The notes below the pieces were generated by a model that did not search any database, was not told where the DNA came from, and saw only the letters and a list, made by a program, of their open reading frames with translations. A program made the position numbers and the translations under genes. From Thalia democratica (taxonomy: Eukaryota), in assembly GCA_965202585.1 (NCBI GenBank), contig OZ241833.1:42408001-42472000 (forward strand): DNA of 64,000 bases, given 5' to 3'. This document shows positions 3,209-15,669 of the stretch, piece by piece (position 1 is the first letter of the stretch; each line of letters starts with the position of its first letter).

Positions 3209-4290
3209 GAAGGGCGCCACCTAACCAACGCTACCACGCCACGAGATTGTAAACTTTTTTAATCGCCTGGAGTTGAAAAAAAGTTGTTTCTTTTGAATTG
3301 TGCTGAAAATTTGTTTGTTTAAGGTTTCAGTTGAAGTTTTCCAAAAATTTAAAAGTATAAAAGTAAAGGTTATAAATAATTTTATTTAGTCTATGTTTGG
3401 TTTGTCTATGAACTGATGTTATAAAATTTCAAAGTATAATTTTAGAAATAAAGAAATTAAAAAAGTTAAACAAATAGTTCCATTTTTGCTGAACTTAATG
3501 TATTAATAAAAATGTAAAACAAATATTTATTTTGATGTTTAGATGTAGTTAGTAGTTGTCCGTCTAGTTTTTATATATTTTATTGGACTATTTATATTCG
3601 TTTTTTATATTACTTTAAAAAAAAACATCCACCTCTAATGTCAAGTTGTGCTTATAAAAAATGTATGTACATTTAAAAAAAGTAAGAAATAAATATTTTA
3701 AACTTAAGTCTGGCCTTTTATTGAGATTATAAGTAAAATTTTGAGTCGAAAAATTATTTTTGTTTAATTGACTTTCTTTAATATGATAATAACTTAAATA
3801 TTTCTCAAAAAACTCTCGAACAATTATTATTTTTTTGTTTCAGTAAAATATCTTTAAATTTTAAAAAAGTATAAGTACATCAGATTGATAGTTTTTATTT
3901 TAATTGTACATTACATACTACCTTGCTTTATTACTAATAAATTATAAAATTAATTTGTTTTTGTGTTTTTTTTGTTTTAAGTATATACAGTACATATAAA
4001 ATTAGGTTACATAAATTTAAGCTAAGTTTACTGAGTTAAAGCAACTCAAAAAGTTATTAAATACTTCAAAAAAAAAAAGAAACAAGTTTATTTAAGCTGA
4101 TGAACTTTTGAAATCGTTCCCAACAAAACATGTTAAAAAAGCTGTTTTGAAAATTTGAAGGTTTGTTTAAATAATTAACATGAAAATTATATTTGTATTT
4201 TTTTTGCCTCAAAAGTACTAACAAGCTTGTGCATATCTGTTTCATTGCCGTCAAATAAGTTAAAATTAAGTGTTAAGTCTTTATTATTAC

Positions 4291-4663
4291 CAGGGTTGCC
4301 ACTTTACCTGGAAACCTGGAAAGCTCTTGAAAAACCTGGAATTCGAGAATTTAGGCAAAAATAACCTGGAAAAACCTGGAGTTTTTAATAATTTTAACAT
4401 TTTCAGTACTAAAATTTCAATTTGACACAAAAAATCAACAAATAAATAAGATTTTTTTGTCATCATCAAAAAATTTTTTTATTAAAAAACACAATTAAAG
4501 TAACTTTACAGTATGTTTTAAATATTTTTATACTATTTAACACAGTTTCTTTTATAGAAATTAACTTAAAACTAAAAATAGACCCAAAAATGTTTACTTT
4601 TAAAAACCTGGAAGAAATTTAGATAACCTGGAAAAAATTTTGAAAAAACGAGTGGCAACCCTG
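4291..4663. mobile_element. Non-autonomous TIR DNA transposon (MITE), hAT-like termini
   Basis: Perfect 13-bp TIRs: CAGGGTTGCCACT (4291-4303) and AGTGGCAACCCTG (4651-4663). Seven subterminal ACCTGGA motifs. Flanks TTATTAC/TTCTTAC match only imperfectly, so there is no clean 8-bp TSD. Confidence 0.8.
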
Positions 4664-6393
4664 TTCTTACTCACCACAAGTGGTATCGCTCACAGCTTGA
4701 AAAATTTCATTTAAAACATTTTAAGATTAAATTTTATAGCAGCCCCATATCAGGCACTACCAATGGCAGTTACGCACAAAAGTTCAGGTGGTACGAAATG
4801 ACCTCGGCTTTATAAAACTCATAAAGTGTTTCTCAAAACATTTAACCGTTCGTAGTTGTTCTTTTTAGTATTTTTATATAAAGAAGTTTGATAATCTTTT
4901 ATATACGGCTAAAAACTCTTTGTAGTTTACTTGAAATAATAACCTTGTCTAAATACTTAAATCTTTCACTTTGTTTAATTTGTATACTTTTGTTTTTGCT
5001 TTTATTATATTAATTTCCCGACATTTTAGCCATGCTACGCCCTTGACGTTTTATAACTATTAATATTTATAATAAAAAAAACTCTGTTAAGTTTTTCAGT
5101 ACCAATCAACATTTATTTTTCCATTATTTACAATATATTTATACACATTCATTAAATGCAATTGAGTAAAAAAAATAAAATTTATTTAGATGTATACTTA
5201 AAGTACAATTTTTATAGTTTTAATTTTTTCTTAAGTTTTTTTTAGTTTGAAAACACTACAGGTTTTATGAAACTGAATAAACTTTGAAGTTATTTTTCTG
5301 TACTGGAAATATACATAAATTTTGAGTTTATTTGTAGCATGAAGTATTTTTTATTTTAGAAACTTTATTTTAATGATTGCGTAGGGAAGTTTCAGTTATG
5401 CAATTACCATTTTGTGACAACAAAAAGCGTAGTTGTTTAACTTGATAAAAATGCTATGTTTTTAATAATATTATTACATGTATTTTTGTTCGGCTAACCA
5501 AAAGCTCAAAAATTTCTTTTTTATTGTAAGCTTTTATTTTTACAAACCTGAACTGTGATAAGACTTGTAAACTATCTAATGTTTCGGTGTGAAAGTACAG
5601 TACTATAAAAAACACTGCATACATCATTTTGAATTACATATTTTTTATTATCTCAACTACAATCGTTAGTCACAGTTACTTGCAGTTGTAATAGAAAATG
5701 GCGACTATGGCGACCTGAGAAAATGTAGCCTGATAATGTTTTAAAAGGTAAAACCATCAAGTTTCTTCTTGAGAACTCTCCAATTTAAATTTGTAACAGA
5801 GTTTGCTAATGTTGCAAAGCGTTTGTTTGTTTTTAATCGTGCTCAACTCTGATTGAATTCTGACAAATGTGACTCTATAAACTCTACGTTGTCTTCGTGC
5901 AAGCATATTTGCCAACTCTTAGTGTTCTACTTGACCCTGATCTGTTGAAAAAAACTATTAATTTTACACTGTGCACTTACTTAATTTTTTTTTTGTTATT
6001 CTTTACAATAGGTATACACATTTAATTTGAATTTGATTATAATGTCTTGCATTATCATATAATTTTAGTTATCCATCGTCTTATTTTTATTTTATTTTGC
6101 AGGCCTGAAGATCCCTTAGGAGTGAAACGTCGTTGCCTTTGTGTAAATAAATTTAATATTATTCTTTACAATAGAAGTTAAAACCTTCTCAGTCAACGGG
6201 CTTGATTTATCTGAAAATTCTTTTTGGAATTTTGCAGGCGTGTTATAAAACGAATTTTGTTTTAGAAGTTTTCGAAAATACAACGATTTTATTTCAAACC
6301 CTGACACGCACGGTTGTAATAAAATGAAAGTTTAATAAGTAATACTGGTACGTAAAACTTAATTAATAAAAAACAAAAGCTAATTTGAAAGTT

Positions 6394-6520
6394 TAAAGCT
6401 CAGTGTTTGTTGTCATCAAGCTGAAAAGTTCTTCGCGCACCAGAGCTTTTTGCTTGGCCTCTGACCATGTTAACCCAGCGGTCTGTACGTTTCCCATCCG
6501 TAACCAATGGTTATGTTCCA
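6394..6520 (-). mobile_element. 3' remnant of an RTE-like non-LTR retrotransposon ORF
   Basis: The minus frame reads HNHWLRMGNVQTAGLTWSEAKQKALVREELFSL, resembling the ...glTW.ea...A.dR..W C-terminal motif of RTE-clade reverse transcriptases. Confidence 0.5.
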
Positions 6521-7944
6521 GATAATGACCAAACAAAGTTAGATAAACAATTTCACTTTTATTAACTTTAAGTTCAACTAACTTTGTTATAGAAAAGGGG
6601 TGTGAAACTTAGGGCATGTAGGTAAAACCCGCTTAATAACTATTAATAATAAAAGTTTGTATTAAACAAATTAAATGAAAAATTGCCAAGTAAAAGTTTC
6701 AAGTAAGTTTTAAACTAATTTGTTTTTTGAACAACAAAAAAAAAATTAAAAGTTAAATCACACAGTTTAACTGAAATCTTATGATAAGAATCAGAATTTC
6801 TACTTTATGCATTTAATAAACCAGAAAATTTAAAGGTTTTTTAGTAAGGTACTATATTACTAAAGAAAGTTTATTAAGAATTTAAAGACCTAAGTAAAAA
6901 TATTTTCAAATGCTTCTCTTTATTGATCAAAAAATAAGTTAACAAATACCAATAAAAAGCAAGTAAAGGTTTACATTTGGGTCTTTATTAGCTTTTTGTA
7001 AATTTTATAGCAACAAAAAATACTTATAAATGTTTATACACCCACATTATAAACAAGTTTAAAAACAAACCGAAACTGTAGATTTGTTTTTGCTGGATGA
7101 CCAACTTGTGTCTTTTTCAAGAAACTTATGTTATAAGTCAAATATGTTGTTGTTTTATAAAAAAAACTTTTTTTAAACATAAACTATTTTTGCTATTTTA
7201 AATTAATTTGATCAGGATCTATATTTGAAATCAAAATCAGGCCTAACTTTGGTCTTTAAGCTAGGATCCGGCCGGAAGCGTGTCCTTGTTGAAAATGCCG
7301 GATTTAGCTAGATTCGTATTACGTATCCTAAATATGACAAATTTTATCAAGAAATTTAACTTTTTAACAAGGTGAAACAACTTTTGTTAATATTGTGTTA
7401 TAAAAAACTGTTTTTCTTTTTTAATTTGTTACTCAATTTAACTAAAATCCTAAGACAACGATCAGAATTTTTAGTTCAAACATTTAATAAACTAAAAATT
7501 TGTTAATGATATATTTTTAAGTAGGGCTATATATTCAAAGTAAGTTTATTAACTTTAGGATTTAAAGAAAAAAAAAAATTAAAATTATATTATCAAAAGT
7601 ATCAGTAAAAAGATTCGAACAAACTAAGAGCTTGGGTTTGTACAAAAAATTCAGCCTGTTTTGTTAGTCTTGGACAAAGAACCTTAATAATTCTTTATAA
7701 ATTTAAATCGTTCCGTAGCTTATTAATAGTTCTTCTTGTTGAGCATGTCTTGTTATTTCAAACTGGCTGTTAAAACTTGAAAAATTTTGGTGGTGGTTGA
7801 GTTTTTTGATACGATTAAGTGCATCGCTGTTTTTGTTAGTCATTTGTGCTTTAGTGCGTGATTGAAGCATCGCCTTTTGGTTGCTACTTGTAATCAACTT
7901 TGAGCACAACATTTTAAGTTAAACGAAGAAACGTTTGTTGAGTA

Positions 7945-11741: not shown

Positions 11742-12136
11742 GCAACAAGCAGGTCTTGTGGGAACGTGACACTATCAGCTGTCAGGATTTGTTTCTCGGT
11801 GTGGCGAAAATGGCTTTTTTATCTGACGGAGTTTGAAGCACTAGAGATGCGCTTTCGCTGACTTACGTGTTTCTCGGTATGTTCTTTTTAGATCTCGCCG
11901 CTTTTTCGTATGAGTCACCGAAGAAATCCGAACCGCTTTGTCGAACATCAGTCAAAAAAATCTTCTTTTCTGTAACATTGACAAACGTTTCATTCTTTTG
12001 TTTCGTTAAAAAAGTAATTATTTCTCATCTCAAAAAAATCTTCTATGTTTTTTTTACGAATTCTCTGCATTTTTGTATAAAAAATGTGTCTCATCGATCA
12101 GTTTGCAAACTCGTCATTACAAATTGTTTTATGACG

Positions 12137-14849
12137 TCACAATGCGCTCTTAGCATGCTTCTTGTTCTTAGGCTTCCTGGTGAAGAATATGAGTATCTTG
12201 GACCCCTTCCTGACGTGGGGATGCACCTTCCGGTACCACTTCTTGGGCGTGCTCTCCAGCAGGTGGCGTATCTCGTCCCTGAGCAGCCGGACGCGACGGA
12301 CGTACTCGAAGTAGCCTATGGGCTGCGGTTTCTTTCGCTGCATGTGCCTTCGGACTCCTAAAATTTTTATAAATATTGAGTTTTTAAATCGTTACAAAAA
12401 GACTTTGTTTTCTAATAACTTTAACAAACTTTACTGAATTTTCTTTTGTTGTTTTCTATCGAGAAGGTTAGCGATTTTTTGCCTTAGTTAAAAATAGAAG
12501 AGCAATAATTAAATTCAATTTTACCTTATTAACCTTAAGATTTTCATTTAAAACCATTAAAAGAATCACAAAAGTATTAAACGTTAAGTTTGTGCTATGT
12601 TTTTTATTTTATTTACTCTGTAGTTATTTGTATTAACTAAAAAAGATTATTCAATTTACTGAAATGTAAAGAGATTATTAAAATAAAGATGTGCAAATCA
12701 AATATTTTGTTTACTACAAAGTTTCGGTGGCAAAAAAAATGCGACCTTTTCAGGTTTAATAATATAATAATATAATGTTATAACAAGTTTACTATTTTAC
12801 TATAATTGAAAATGTCGCATTTTTTTTGCCACCGAGACCTGGTAGTAAATAAAACATTTAACTTTCACATCTTTATTTATATTTTATTTAATTAGAAAAA
12901 ACGATCAACCAACCAAACACTGATTTCTTCTCTCTTTGCTCCTTCTTCTTATTTTTCTCCTTCCTCCGCTTTTTCCCCTTCTTCCCCTTCCTCCGCTTCC
13001 TCCTCTTGCCTCCCTTCTCCCTCCGCCTGGTCATCCTCGTCCTCAGCAACAGGTTGAAGGGGGTGGGGCTGCGCGGGTCGTGGGAGAAGATGAGCATGTT
13101 CTGCATGTCCCTGGTGCGGTTCACGAAAACGCCCAGTTTCGTCTCCACGCTGCGCTGGCAACCGTGATGCTTGACACGCATGAGCGATTTCGGTGATGAT
13201 GTTCCGTGCTTCTCGATCTTTGTGGATCTTCTGTTCGGATAAATAAATGTTTAATAAATAAGAACTCTTGTAGCAACTAGTATTTCTGTCCTGTACCTAA
13301 TTTTTGCAAGAACAAACTTGTCTTTTTATATTGATTTTTACGAAATAAAATTAAGGTTTTTGCGAAGCCCTTGAACTGCATGCACTGCTTTGAATATTAG
13401 CTTTATTTGTTTAACAACTTTTAGACTACCCAGAACAAAATTGTATGCGGCTGCTGTTTATTTTACTTATATGCTGTATTTACTTGTTAAGAAAAACTTA
13501 TTGCCATCAAAGATCTCCTGTTTGGAAATATTTTGTTGGTATTCGATAAAAATATTGTTGAAGTGTTATATTGTGAAAGGGTTCGTCAAACCGCGGCTCG
13601 CAAAGCGAAAACCTGCTCGAAGTAGTTTTTTGGATTAGTACAAATTTTTAGTTACTTTAATTTTACTTATTTGTGGGTGCCTCACCTTTCTCTAGATTTT
13701 TTGATCGTATTGTTTTTTTTGAACCAGAGCAAAAATTATAAAAATAAATTTTGACAGAAGAGGGCTGTAACGTCTTCCACGATTTAAAAAAGGTAATAAT
13801 GCTGCATAAAGATCTAGGTTTATTTATTTTGTTGTATACGTAATAAAGTTGTTAGGTATACAAAAAAAATATAAATAAAATTAACAGTTTCCCGATCTGA
13901 GGTTACAAACAAGTTAAATTAAAAGGCGTCCATAGGTTTTGATTATTAAAAGAGAACTGTTCTACTAACTTTTATTTCAACAGTACGTTTATTTTCATAA
14001 AAAACTAGAGCCATTAACCTAATGAAAAATACTTGACGGCTTCAGCGAAAGCATTAAAACCGCTAATACTGTTTTTGATTTAATTTTTTTTCATAAGATT
14101 TTTAACTAATGTAAAAAAATCATAGCTAAATGAAACTTGATGTAACTGTCACTTATGCTAGTCGTTTACAATTATCCAGAAAACTAATTGTAAAAGAAGT
14201 TATTGATACTCTACTTTTATTGTTTTATAATTTTGCAGCTTTTAAAAAACTAAAAATTTAGAGTCAAGTAGTCGTATAACTCAAAACCGTTGATCCACTA
14301 AACTTTATACAAAATTTAACTCTATACTTTAAACTTATTCAAAGTTCAAATAACGTTTGTATGTTCTTTTTGTTCACCGTAGCTTATATGTTCATAATTA
14401 ACTGTAAAACTTCTATTTCTTACTAATGCCGTTATATATCTGAAAAATAAACTTTTGTCAGCATTAAGAAAGTACTAATCACTTTTGTATGAGTTTTCCT
14501 TTTTAATATTCACTTTGCTTCGAGTTATGGATTTTTAAAAATGTTAAAATTTGATAAAATACTGTAAAAATTTATAACTTGAACTAAATGATCACGTTCA
14601 AAGCACTTAGTGAGCAAGTTTTACTAGTGAAAAGAATTATATCGAGAAAATATAAACTAACGTTGGTCTATCGGAAGGAAATGTTGTACCAGTGACATTT
14701 TCCAAACTATTTGCTTTATTCAGGTTTGTTATTTTGATTGTTCCAACTAAACTCACCGGTTTCTTTGACTTAGTTGTGTTCTTTAAAGCTACACAGTTGC
14801 TAGCAACTAGTGTTAAAGTCACAACTATAAGAAATGTTAGCTGTGCCAT
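12137..14849 (-). CDS. 241-aa predicted secreted, highly basic (Lys/Arg-rich) protein of unknown family
   Basis: Exons 14849-14662 (MAQLTFLIVVTLTLVASNCVA... hydrophobic signal peptide; donor GTTAGT, phase 2), 13230-12914 (phase 2 to 1, GC3-rich; ...TRRREKGGKRRKRRKGKKGKKRRKEKNKKKEQREKKSVF; donor GTTGGT) and 12357-12137 (GVRRHMQRKKPQPIGYFEYVRRVRLLRDEIRHLLE...KHAKSAL*). Total 726 nt, open throughout. Confidence 0.8.
12680..12880. repeat. Foldback inverted repeat (arms about 70 bp) in intron 2 of the basic-protein gene
   Basis: AAATAAAGATGTG..AAATATTTTGTTTACTACAAAGTTTCGGTGGCAAAAAAAATGCGAC is mirrored by GTCGCATTTTTTTTGCCACCGAGACCTGGTAGTAAATAAAACATTT..CACATCTTTATTT. Confidence 0.8.
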
Positions 14850-15669
14850 TTTACTCTTCTGTAAAATATAGTTTGTTCAAGTGAATTTCTTTGTTTTATA
14901 AAATTTACTAATATTTATAGTTTTTATGGGTTTATCTTATTAACATACTCAACTTATATTTTTAATGCTTAAAAGATATTGGTATATACGTAATAACTTT
15001 GATTTAAGAGTTAGTTGTATAATTGTAAAAATAGCGATATAACTGTATTCAAAAAAACAGTTAAAACATTAAAAAGTGTAGTATTGTACTCAAAACTCTC
15101 CCAAAGATTTATTCTAAATACGTATATTTTTATAAAACAAAATTCTGACACGTATTTTATTTATTATATATCATTTATTTTATAGTAAATGAAATTGTTA
15201 GAAAAAATATAAAATTTTAAGAAATACTCATTAGTATTTTTCGACTTGTAATTAAAAAGTATTCCGTACTATATAACTACTGATTTTTTTAATGAATCCT
15301 TGAATATTTAAACAAGCTTAAAGTTTTATCGAAACTGATTTTGTATAATTTTTTGATAATATATTTTTATTTACCAAGAGTTTGCGTTGAAGTTAAGTAG
15401 AATTTTATTGAGTTACAATCTAGTTATAACTGCTTCTACTTTAACTGCTTATAGTTTTATCATAAAAAAAAACAACTATTGAATGAAAATCCTACTCAAA
15501 AACTCTTTATAAAATTTACATCTTTACAACTAGTTATTTTAGAAGTTTCAACAATGAAACTTCAACCACAACTTTAAACAATTTTTATCCAAAAATTATT
15601 TTTTGTGCTAGCTGACTACCTCGGTCGATACCAAACGCGACTGAATCCAAAAACCAAAACATTCTTCTA

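Follow-up and report, generated by a model that had tools for sequence, protein, structure and literature searches.

Which protein, if any, is encoded on the minus strand at positions 14849 to 12137 of a 64,000-nucleotide (nt) stretch of the Thalia democratica genome (contig OZ241833.1, positions 42,408,001 to 42,472,000), and where would that protein act? An initial annotation of this stretch, hereafter the window, had joined one AT-rich open reading frame (ORF) and two GC-rich, coding-looking blocks into a three-exon gene for an orphan secreted protein with a polybasic core. We reproduced this model exactly; its 726-nt coding sequence specifies 241 amino acids (aa) and a stop codon. By comparison with orthologous contigs, the model is established as a real, single-copy, three-exon gene, and its product is most likely a secreted, N-glycosylated and very basic protein of about 220 mature residues with a calculated isoelectric point (pI) of about 11.8. 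The features of the gene, by position in the window, are the following.

14849-14662, minus strand: exon 1, 188 nt, ending in phase 2; start codon, predicted signal peptide, then a stretch rich in S/T/N containing the sequons NTT and N[VI]T.
14849-14787, minus strand: predicted signal peptide (aa 1-21), within exon 1.
14661-13231, minus strand: intron 1, GT..AG (GTTAGT..CAG), holding a conserved non-coding block at about 13512-13405.
13230-12914, minus strand: exon 2, 317 nt; His-rich stretch, Cys87 (13160-13158), 40-aa core and polybasic tract.
13121-13113, minus strand: sequon NRT, inside the exon-2 core.
13031-12924, minus strand: polybasic tract (aa 130-165), with RRKRR (aa 139-143) at 13004-12990.
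12913-12358, minus strand: intron 2 (GTTGGT..TAG), carrying an insertion at 12681-12878 that forms a hairpin like that of a miniature inverted-repeat transposable element (MITE).
12357-12137, minus strand: exon 3, 221 nt including the stop codon at 12139-12137; basic C-terminal domain, including a helix predicted for aa 184-204 (12313-12251).

Orthologues were sought by word-index protein searches with the exon-1 and exon-2 ORFs. These searches returned only short unnamed ORFs on Tara Oceans marine metagenome contigs, which are orthologues of the locus. One contig, L002 (3887 nt), was collinear with the window from the 5′ flank to the 3′ flank, with counterparts of all three exons and of a single intronic block. 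When spliced at the homologous sites, it yielded exons of 191, 290 and 209 nt and an intact ORF of 229 aa; the exon lengths differed from those of the window by +3, −27 and −12 nt, all multiples of three, and the splice phases were the same. The exon-1 set comprised five sequences of four types (the window, L009, the L002 group, and the near-identical pair L010 and L011), and exon 1 measured either 188 or 191 nt in every type. The orthologous exon-1 ORFs (P0002-P0005) showed 74-83% identity. In both L001 and L002, the frame of exon 2 was open and conserved from its acceptor, with insertions and deletions (indels) in multiples of three. So far, the gene has been seen only in the AT-rich genome of T. 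democratica and in what are probably close relatives sampled by Tara Oceans.

At the junction of exons 1 and 2, the split codon reads AC|A in the window; L002 has AC|G, and threonine is specified either way. Immediately before the exon-2 donor, the residues S-V-F are the same in the window and L002 while all three third positions differ, and at the start of exon 3, upstream of an internal methionine, V-R-R-H is preserved through GTC/GTG and CGA/AGG changes. Similarity ended a few bases past each donor in each sequence compared; for exon 1, it stopped directly after the donor GTTAGTTTAT in all sequence types. Splicing of exon 1 to exon 2, on which the initial annotation depended, is thereby supported indirectly.

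The donor chosen for exon 2 (G|GTTGGT, phase 1) is weak, and a rival at 12921 (GT at 12920) looks no worse. Use of the rival site brought the exon-3 frame to a stop after 13 codons in the window, and in the orthologue L001 the alternative exon-3 frame opened with GAG TGA, again a stop. Because the rival donor fails in both sequences, the weaker donor picked by the initial annotation was the correct one. Exon 2 was also considered as a terminal exon, with a stop at 12888 and AATAAA just after it. Since the orthologues diverge past G|GTTGG while exon 3 is kept in the joined frame, this arrangement is not the conserved form, and might at most be a minor isoform. A third candidate, trans-splicing onto exon 2 with translation from Met80, was rejected: both orthologues have Asn in place of Met80, and upstream of this position the frame remains open across indels of 3 and 6 nt. 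Thus, exon 2 needs an upstream coding exon.

The public runs that carry the locus are two genomic DNA runs from one sample. Read depth over the exons in these runs was that of a single-copy sequence, and tblastn detected no paralogue in the 64-kb window. Contigs from the runs contained a second allelic form with eight differences in exon 2 and three in exon 3. Read in the proposed frames, ten of the 11 are synonymous (seven in exon 2, where the remaining one is K>R, and all three in exon 3). Other frames, on either strand, make at most 5 of the 11 synonymous, and the chance expectation is about 22%. At a more generous probability of 0.30, the binomial tail for 10 synonymous changes among 11 is about 5e-5. 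The contig of the second allele also carries indels of 1 nt and 7 nt just past the stop codon, and none within the exons.

Between the window and L002, synonymous divergence (dS) was 0.66, and the ratio of nonsynonymous to synonymous divergence (dN/dS) was 0.14 overall. By segment, dN/dS was highest in the signal peptide (0.61) and lower in the remainder of exon 1 (0.27), in exon 3 (0.17) and in the core of exon 2 (0.11), the last two values being seen at a dS of about 0.5-0.6. A raised ratio is usual for signal peptides. In the mature part of exon 1, variable sites were distributed 7:5:20 over the three codon positions, with pairwise dN/dS of 0.25-0.37. Collectively, these comparisons show that the gene is under purifying selection.

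The GC content of third codon positions (GC3) was 0.27 in exon 1 and 0.79-0.80 in exons 2 and 3, in a region of 26% GC. A jump of the same kind was repeated in the L002 orthologue (0.29 versus 0.74-0.80). Because L002 keeps this jump despite a dS of about 0.6, the comparison suggests that the GC-rich third positions are maintained and are no relic. The window as a whole is very AT-rich (26% GC), and GC3 in its other exons ranges from 0.41 to 0.75.

By inspection, all five exon-1 sequences begin with the layout of a signal peptide, M-A-x-[LF]-[TSR], followed by 12-13 apolar residues, [SN]-[NK]-C-[VL]-A and then L-K-N-T-T, and this layout is kept in all four sequence types. Three of the five sequences, representing two of the four types, have MAQLR as their N-terminal region. 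The Kyte-Doolittle mean of the hydrophobic core over 11 residues peaks at 2.9; as in cleavable signal peptides, the core falls, on inspection, within 7-15 residues and small uncharged residues occupy positions −3 and −1. Zero or one basic residue precedes the core, and four Lys lie within the 10 residues after it.

The first mature stretch consists of about 60 S/T/N/K-rich residues and holds two of the three sequons, which are N24 (NTT), N51 (NVT) and N100 (NRT). All three are conserved. The second is kept through a change between N-V-T and N-I-T, and the third is kept though all three of its codons have changed (AAC CGC ACC versus AAT AGA ACG). A variable His-rich patch adjoins Cys87, the sole Cys of the mature part, and is followed by the exon-2 core, 40 residues from GCQR to NLLL of which two positions vary among three sequences.

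The polybasic tract contains 25 K/R among 36 residues (69%). The window, L001 and L002 share the same first 19 residues of the tract, despite about eight synonymous changes; these residues include G-G-K-R-R-K-R-R-K-G-K-K. Within this invariant part, the overlapping motifs RRKR and RKRR (aa 139-143) match the furin-type pattern R-X-[KR]-R in all three sequences. The second half of the tract varies in length, so that the whole tract measures 36 aa in the window and 28 in L002. Several clusters of the Cardin-Weintraub type (BBXB, BBBXXB) fall within aa 130-165; the whole protein has 26 overlapping dibasic pairs and a pI of 11.8. The C-terminal domain comprises 76 residues with 23 K/R and 4 D/E; of these 76, 88% are shared with L002. 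Its helix at aa 184-204 was the one reasonably confident element of the AlphaFold2 models, with a predicted local distance difference test (pLDDT) score of about 80. The hydrophobic moment of this helix was 0.40, compared with 0.27 for shuffled sequences, 18% of which reached 0.40. Both peptide strings quoted in the initial annotation are present in the model, as are the polybasic K/R core, the single mature Cys, the sequons and the many dibasic pairs that it described. Its account of the C-terminus as basic and amphipathic stands for the charge, while the amphipathicity is weak.

Searches for known families were run exon by exon with single-exon queries, by which distant relatives could be missed. 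On this basis, the product of each exon came nowhere near the Pfam cut-offs, nothing below E=1.5 was found among PDB sequences, and the best ESM Atlas scores (0.60 and 0.73) were to unnamed clusters. A phmmer search of 1.84 billion cluster representatives with the C-terminal domain alone recovered just the cluster of its own 68-aa ORF, and JGI metagenome contigs scanned by DNA pattern and by protein alignment yielded nothing. Resemblances to the Sulf hydrophilic domain, to PTH/PTHrP, to CRH-type helices and to FGF C-termini were dropped, being without Pfam or PDB support. No family is therefore detectable, and the protein would be an orphan in the sense that detectable homologues are absent. 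The annotation's description of an orphan secreted protein with a polybasic core, checked in this way against known families, holds as far as can be judged from sequence, given the conserved signal-peptide layout and the lack of a match in Pfam, PDB, ESM Atlas or phmmer.

Passage through the secretory pathway is the simplest way to account for a signal-peptide layout and sequons that are both conserved and for a convertase motif that has not shifted position. We favor, at about an even chance, a lineage-restricted secreted glycoprotein or proprotein that is tethered to matrix or mucus. The first 21 residues would direct such a protein into the endoplasmic reticulum (ER) and be removed by a cut behind the conserved C-[VL]-A. 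Glycans would be added at all three conserved sequons, and an intermolecular disulfide may form through Cys87. Polyanions would be bound by the polybasic tract, for example sulfated glycans in matrix, in mucus or at the cell surface, or else possibly membranes or nucleic acids, and this binding would hold the protein near its site of release. Cleavage by a furin-type convertase at the invariant RRKRR within the tract would then yield two fragments, a glycosylated N-terminal one and a basic, helical C-terminal one, and thereby tune retention. The location of RRKRR inside the tract favors a tract that is both cleavable and used for retention, and the strong constraint on how the basic residues are ordered suggests that a specific partner, beyond mere charge, is involved. 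Of the functions put forward by the initial annotation, those of a proprotein and of a matrix- or polyanion-binding protein are plausible. The heparin-binding domain of SOD3 is reported to be removed by furin (PMC12774472), and in the C-terminal region of Sema3A a basic tract tethers the protein to sulfated glycans and is trimmed by furin (PMC8465649).

Several points weigh against a secreted, tethered protein. The splice junctions are inferred by comparison, and the runs that bear the locus are genomic DNA only. The window's own N-terminal region (MAQ) is without a basic residue while the flank after the core is strongly positive, and under the positive-inside rule an N-out, C-in anchor could be favored. 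Two of the three sequons sit in an N/T/S-rich stretch in which chance sequons are expected. AlphaFold2, run on three-sequence alignments, gave mean pLDDT values of 68 and 58 and so no structural support.

The alternative that survives best, though we consider it unlikely, is an intracellular basic protein, held by an uncleaved signal anchor as an ER-tethered RNA- or ribosome-binding protein, or escaping the ER with the tract serving as a nuclear localization signal (NLS) or nucleolar signal and as a nucleic-acid binder. The charge distribution, with most positive charge after the hydrophobic core and no basic residue in the window's N-terminal region, is the main support for an anchor. By inspection, KRRKRRK fits a classical monopartite NLS, a pI of 11.8 is typical of nucleic-acid binders, and the nearest named ESM Atlas matches are viral capsid-type basic proteins, at low scores of 0.42-0.53. 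There is also a precedent for a double fate in PTHrP, which localizes to the nucleus alongside its secretion. However, the core spans just 12-13 residues and is followed by S/N/K and C-x-A (with Lys in L010 and L011), which suits a cleaved signal peptide better than a membrane span; Arg5 is present in three of the five sequences, and the N-R-T sequon is kept through three synonymous codon changes. A Lys cluster directly after the signal peptide is also found in midkine, a secreted protein, which counts against reading the positive flank as a mark of an anchor.

Somewhat less probable again is a peptide-hormone or neuropeptide precursor, in which the tract would be a stack of convertase sites and the active peptide would arise from the exon-2 core or the C-terminal domain. 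A signal peptide followed by conserved blocks that are split by multibasic sites is consistent with such a precursor, as is strong purifying selection with a ligand acting through a specific receptor; an amidated end could be generated at G-G-K-R-R, and the C-terminal domain is preceded by V-R-R. However, at about 45 and 70 aa the conserved blocks are long, and they are unrepeated and without clean dibasic sites on both sides, no Gly-basic amidation signal follows the C-terminal domain, and the single-exon searches revealed no similarity to known hormone families.

The initial annotation had also offered a cationic antimicrobial peptide precursor, for which the 23 K/R against 4 D/E in the C-terminal 76 residues and the predicted helix could be cited. 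This option is now disfavored, to the point of being very improbable. Antimicrobial effector peptides are usually fast-evolving, whereas here the first half of the tract was invariant and dN/dS was low, at 0.17 (exon 3) and 0.11 (exon-2 core). Moreover, the amphipathicity of the helix was not significant, and there is no acidic pro-piece to neutralize the charge. Finally, a model assembled from chance ORFs or from exons of different genes, for which the reliance on genomic DNA runs, the rise in GC3 from 0.27 to 0.8 between exon 1 and exons 2 and 3 and the 109 ORFs of at least 60 aa in the window could be adduced, is largely refuted by the three conserved, collinear and phase-compatible exons and intact ORF of L002, by coding-type substitution patterns in every exon, by the sharing of the GC3 jump with the orthologue and by an exon 2 that has no conserved start codon and needs an upstream coding exon.

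Conservation at the locus extended beyond the coding exons, on the 5′ side to the following element.

15050-14850, minus strand: conserved 5′ flank, with an AG acceptor at 14860-14859, 9 nt before the start codon, and a leader at 14858-14850.

Over about 200 nt, this flank showed 75-80% identity to L002-L011 across the four sequence types and included the block GAATACAGTTATAT..CTATTTTTACAA; it may be a promoter or outron element. The acceptor TTTTYCAG and the start context AAAATGG were kept in all five sequences, while the 9 nt between them varied freely. The conserved acceptor fits a short 5′ leader that would be added by cis-splicing or by spliced-leader splicing.

In intron 1, the block at 13512-13405 was 82% identical over 114 nt to L002 (2044-2157) and L003 (1929-2042), and the rest of the intron could not be aligned. 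By inspection, the block has stops in all frames, and no Rfam family matched it. From the two sequence types compared, a regulatory element within the intron or a small RNA could be envisaged. The hairpin in intron 2 (12681-12878) has inverted arms of 90 nt that are 83% complementary, with sub-threshold Rfam matches to MITE-derived microRNA precursor families. Its repeat family is very abundant, since word depth in the DNA runs was 3500-7400 over the hairpin and about 80 in its flanks, and the insertion is recent, since L001 and L002 lack it in their shorter orthologous introns. In the DNA runs, two odd joints (13751 to 14991; 16362 to 12358) coincide with short repeats rich in AT.

A palindrome of the cyclic AMP response element (CRE) type, TGACGTCA, at 12132-12139 overlaps the stop codon of the gene. 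The window holds nine copies, compared with 0.2 expected, and the placement over the stop codon is kept in L002 and L013. The palindrome occurs at 3536-3543 and 3558-3565 of L002 and at 554-561 of L013.

32930, 36517, 40720, 40744, 40771, 55240, 55397 and 55476: other sites of the palindrome TGACGTCA in the window.

Elsewhere in the window, a GC-rich exon on the plus strand (2199-2483; GC3 0.75) encodes a highly charged E/K-rich stretch unrelated to the polybasic gene, and sits downstream of 84-bp exon cassettes described in the initial annotation (366-1447).

If the behavior proposed for the secreted, tethered protein is true, the gene specifies a lineage-specific secreted polycation. Strong selection acts on its precise basic sequence and not just on composition, which points to a specific partner, be it a protease, a sulfated glycan or a receptor, in poorly studied and abundant ocean animals. 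More tentatively, and with the balance of likelihood against it, the protein could represent a new family limited to one group of gelatinous marine plankton: a secreted polycation held on the sulfated glycans of a mucus filter, tunic or matrix, perhaps cross-linking or compacting them, with the convertase site as a release switch, or else a new matrix-tethered signaling ligand. Taken alone, the locus is one well-supported orphan gene that opens no long-standing question, and secreted proteins with furin-cleavable basic retention tracts are already well known. The model was validated wholly through comparative genomics with metagenome contigs, and orphan calls in this genome are thus checkable without a transcriptome.

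Among known systems, protamines and other sperm nuclear basic proteins resemble the 36-aa tract in local composition. Unlike them, the present protein has a signal-peptide-like N-terminus and sequons, the tract makes up 15% of its length, and its conserved parts are not of low complexity; further, the tract is Lys-rich, and exons 2 and 3 carry 32 Lys and 29 Arg codons, whereas protamines are Arg-dominated. In the mid-region of PTHrP, a polybasic stretch is both a multibasic processing region and a nuclear localization signal. PTHrP thus shares with this protein a signal peptide, an internal K/R-rich stretch with multibasic sites and a possible dual secreted and nuclear fate. However, no similarity to the PTH/PTHrP N-terminal hormone region was detected, and the conserved helix lies after the basic tract here and before it there.

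Basic tails for matrix retention or heparin binding are also found on the secreted factors PlGF-2, VEGF (exon 6), the long form of PDGF-A and CXCL12-gamma. The heparin-binding domain of SOD3 (PMC12774472) is similar in that a basic cluster retains a secreted protein on sulfated glycans and can be removed by proteolysis. In all of these proteins the tail joins a known fold (cystine knot, chemokine or Cu/Zn SOD), whereas no known domain flanks the tract described here. The tails of class-3 semaphorins likewise place a disordered, K/R-rich tract with internal furin-type sites in a secreted protein, and the tract of Sema3A (residues 725-771) binds heparin and chondroitin sulfate E (PMC8465649). 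There is no sequence homology between the two, and the Sema, PSI and Ig domains are absent here. In contrast to the Sema3A tract, the present tract is internal, is followed by a conserved domain of 76 aa and is more densely charged, with 25 K/R in 36 aa compared with 16 in 47.

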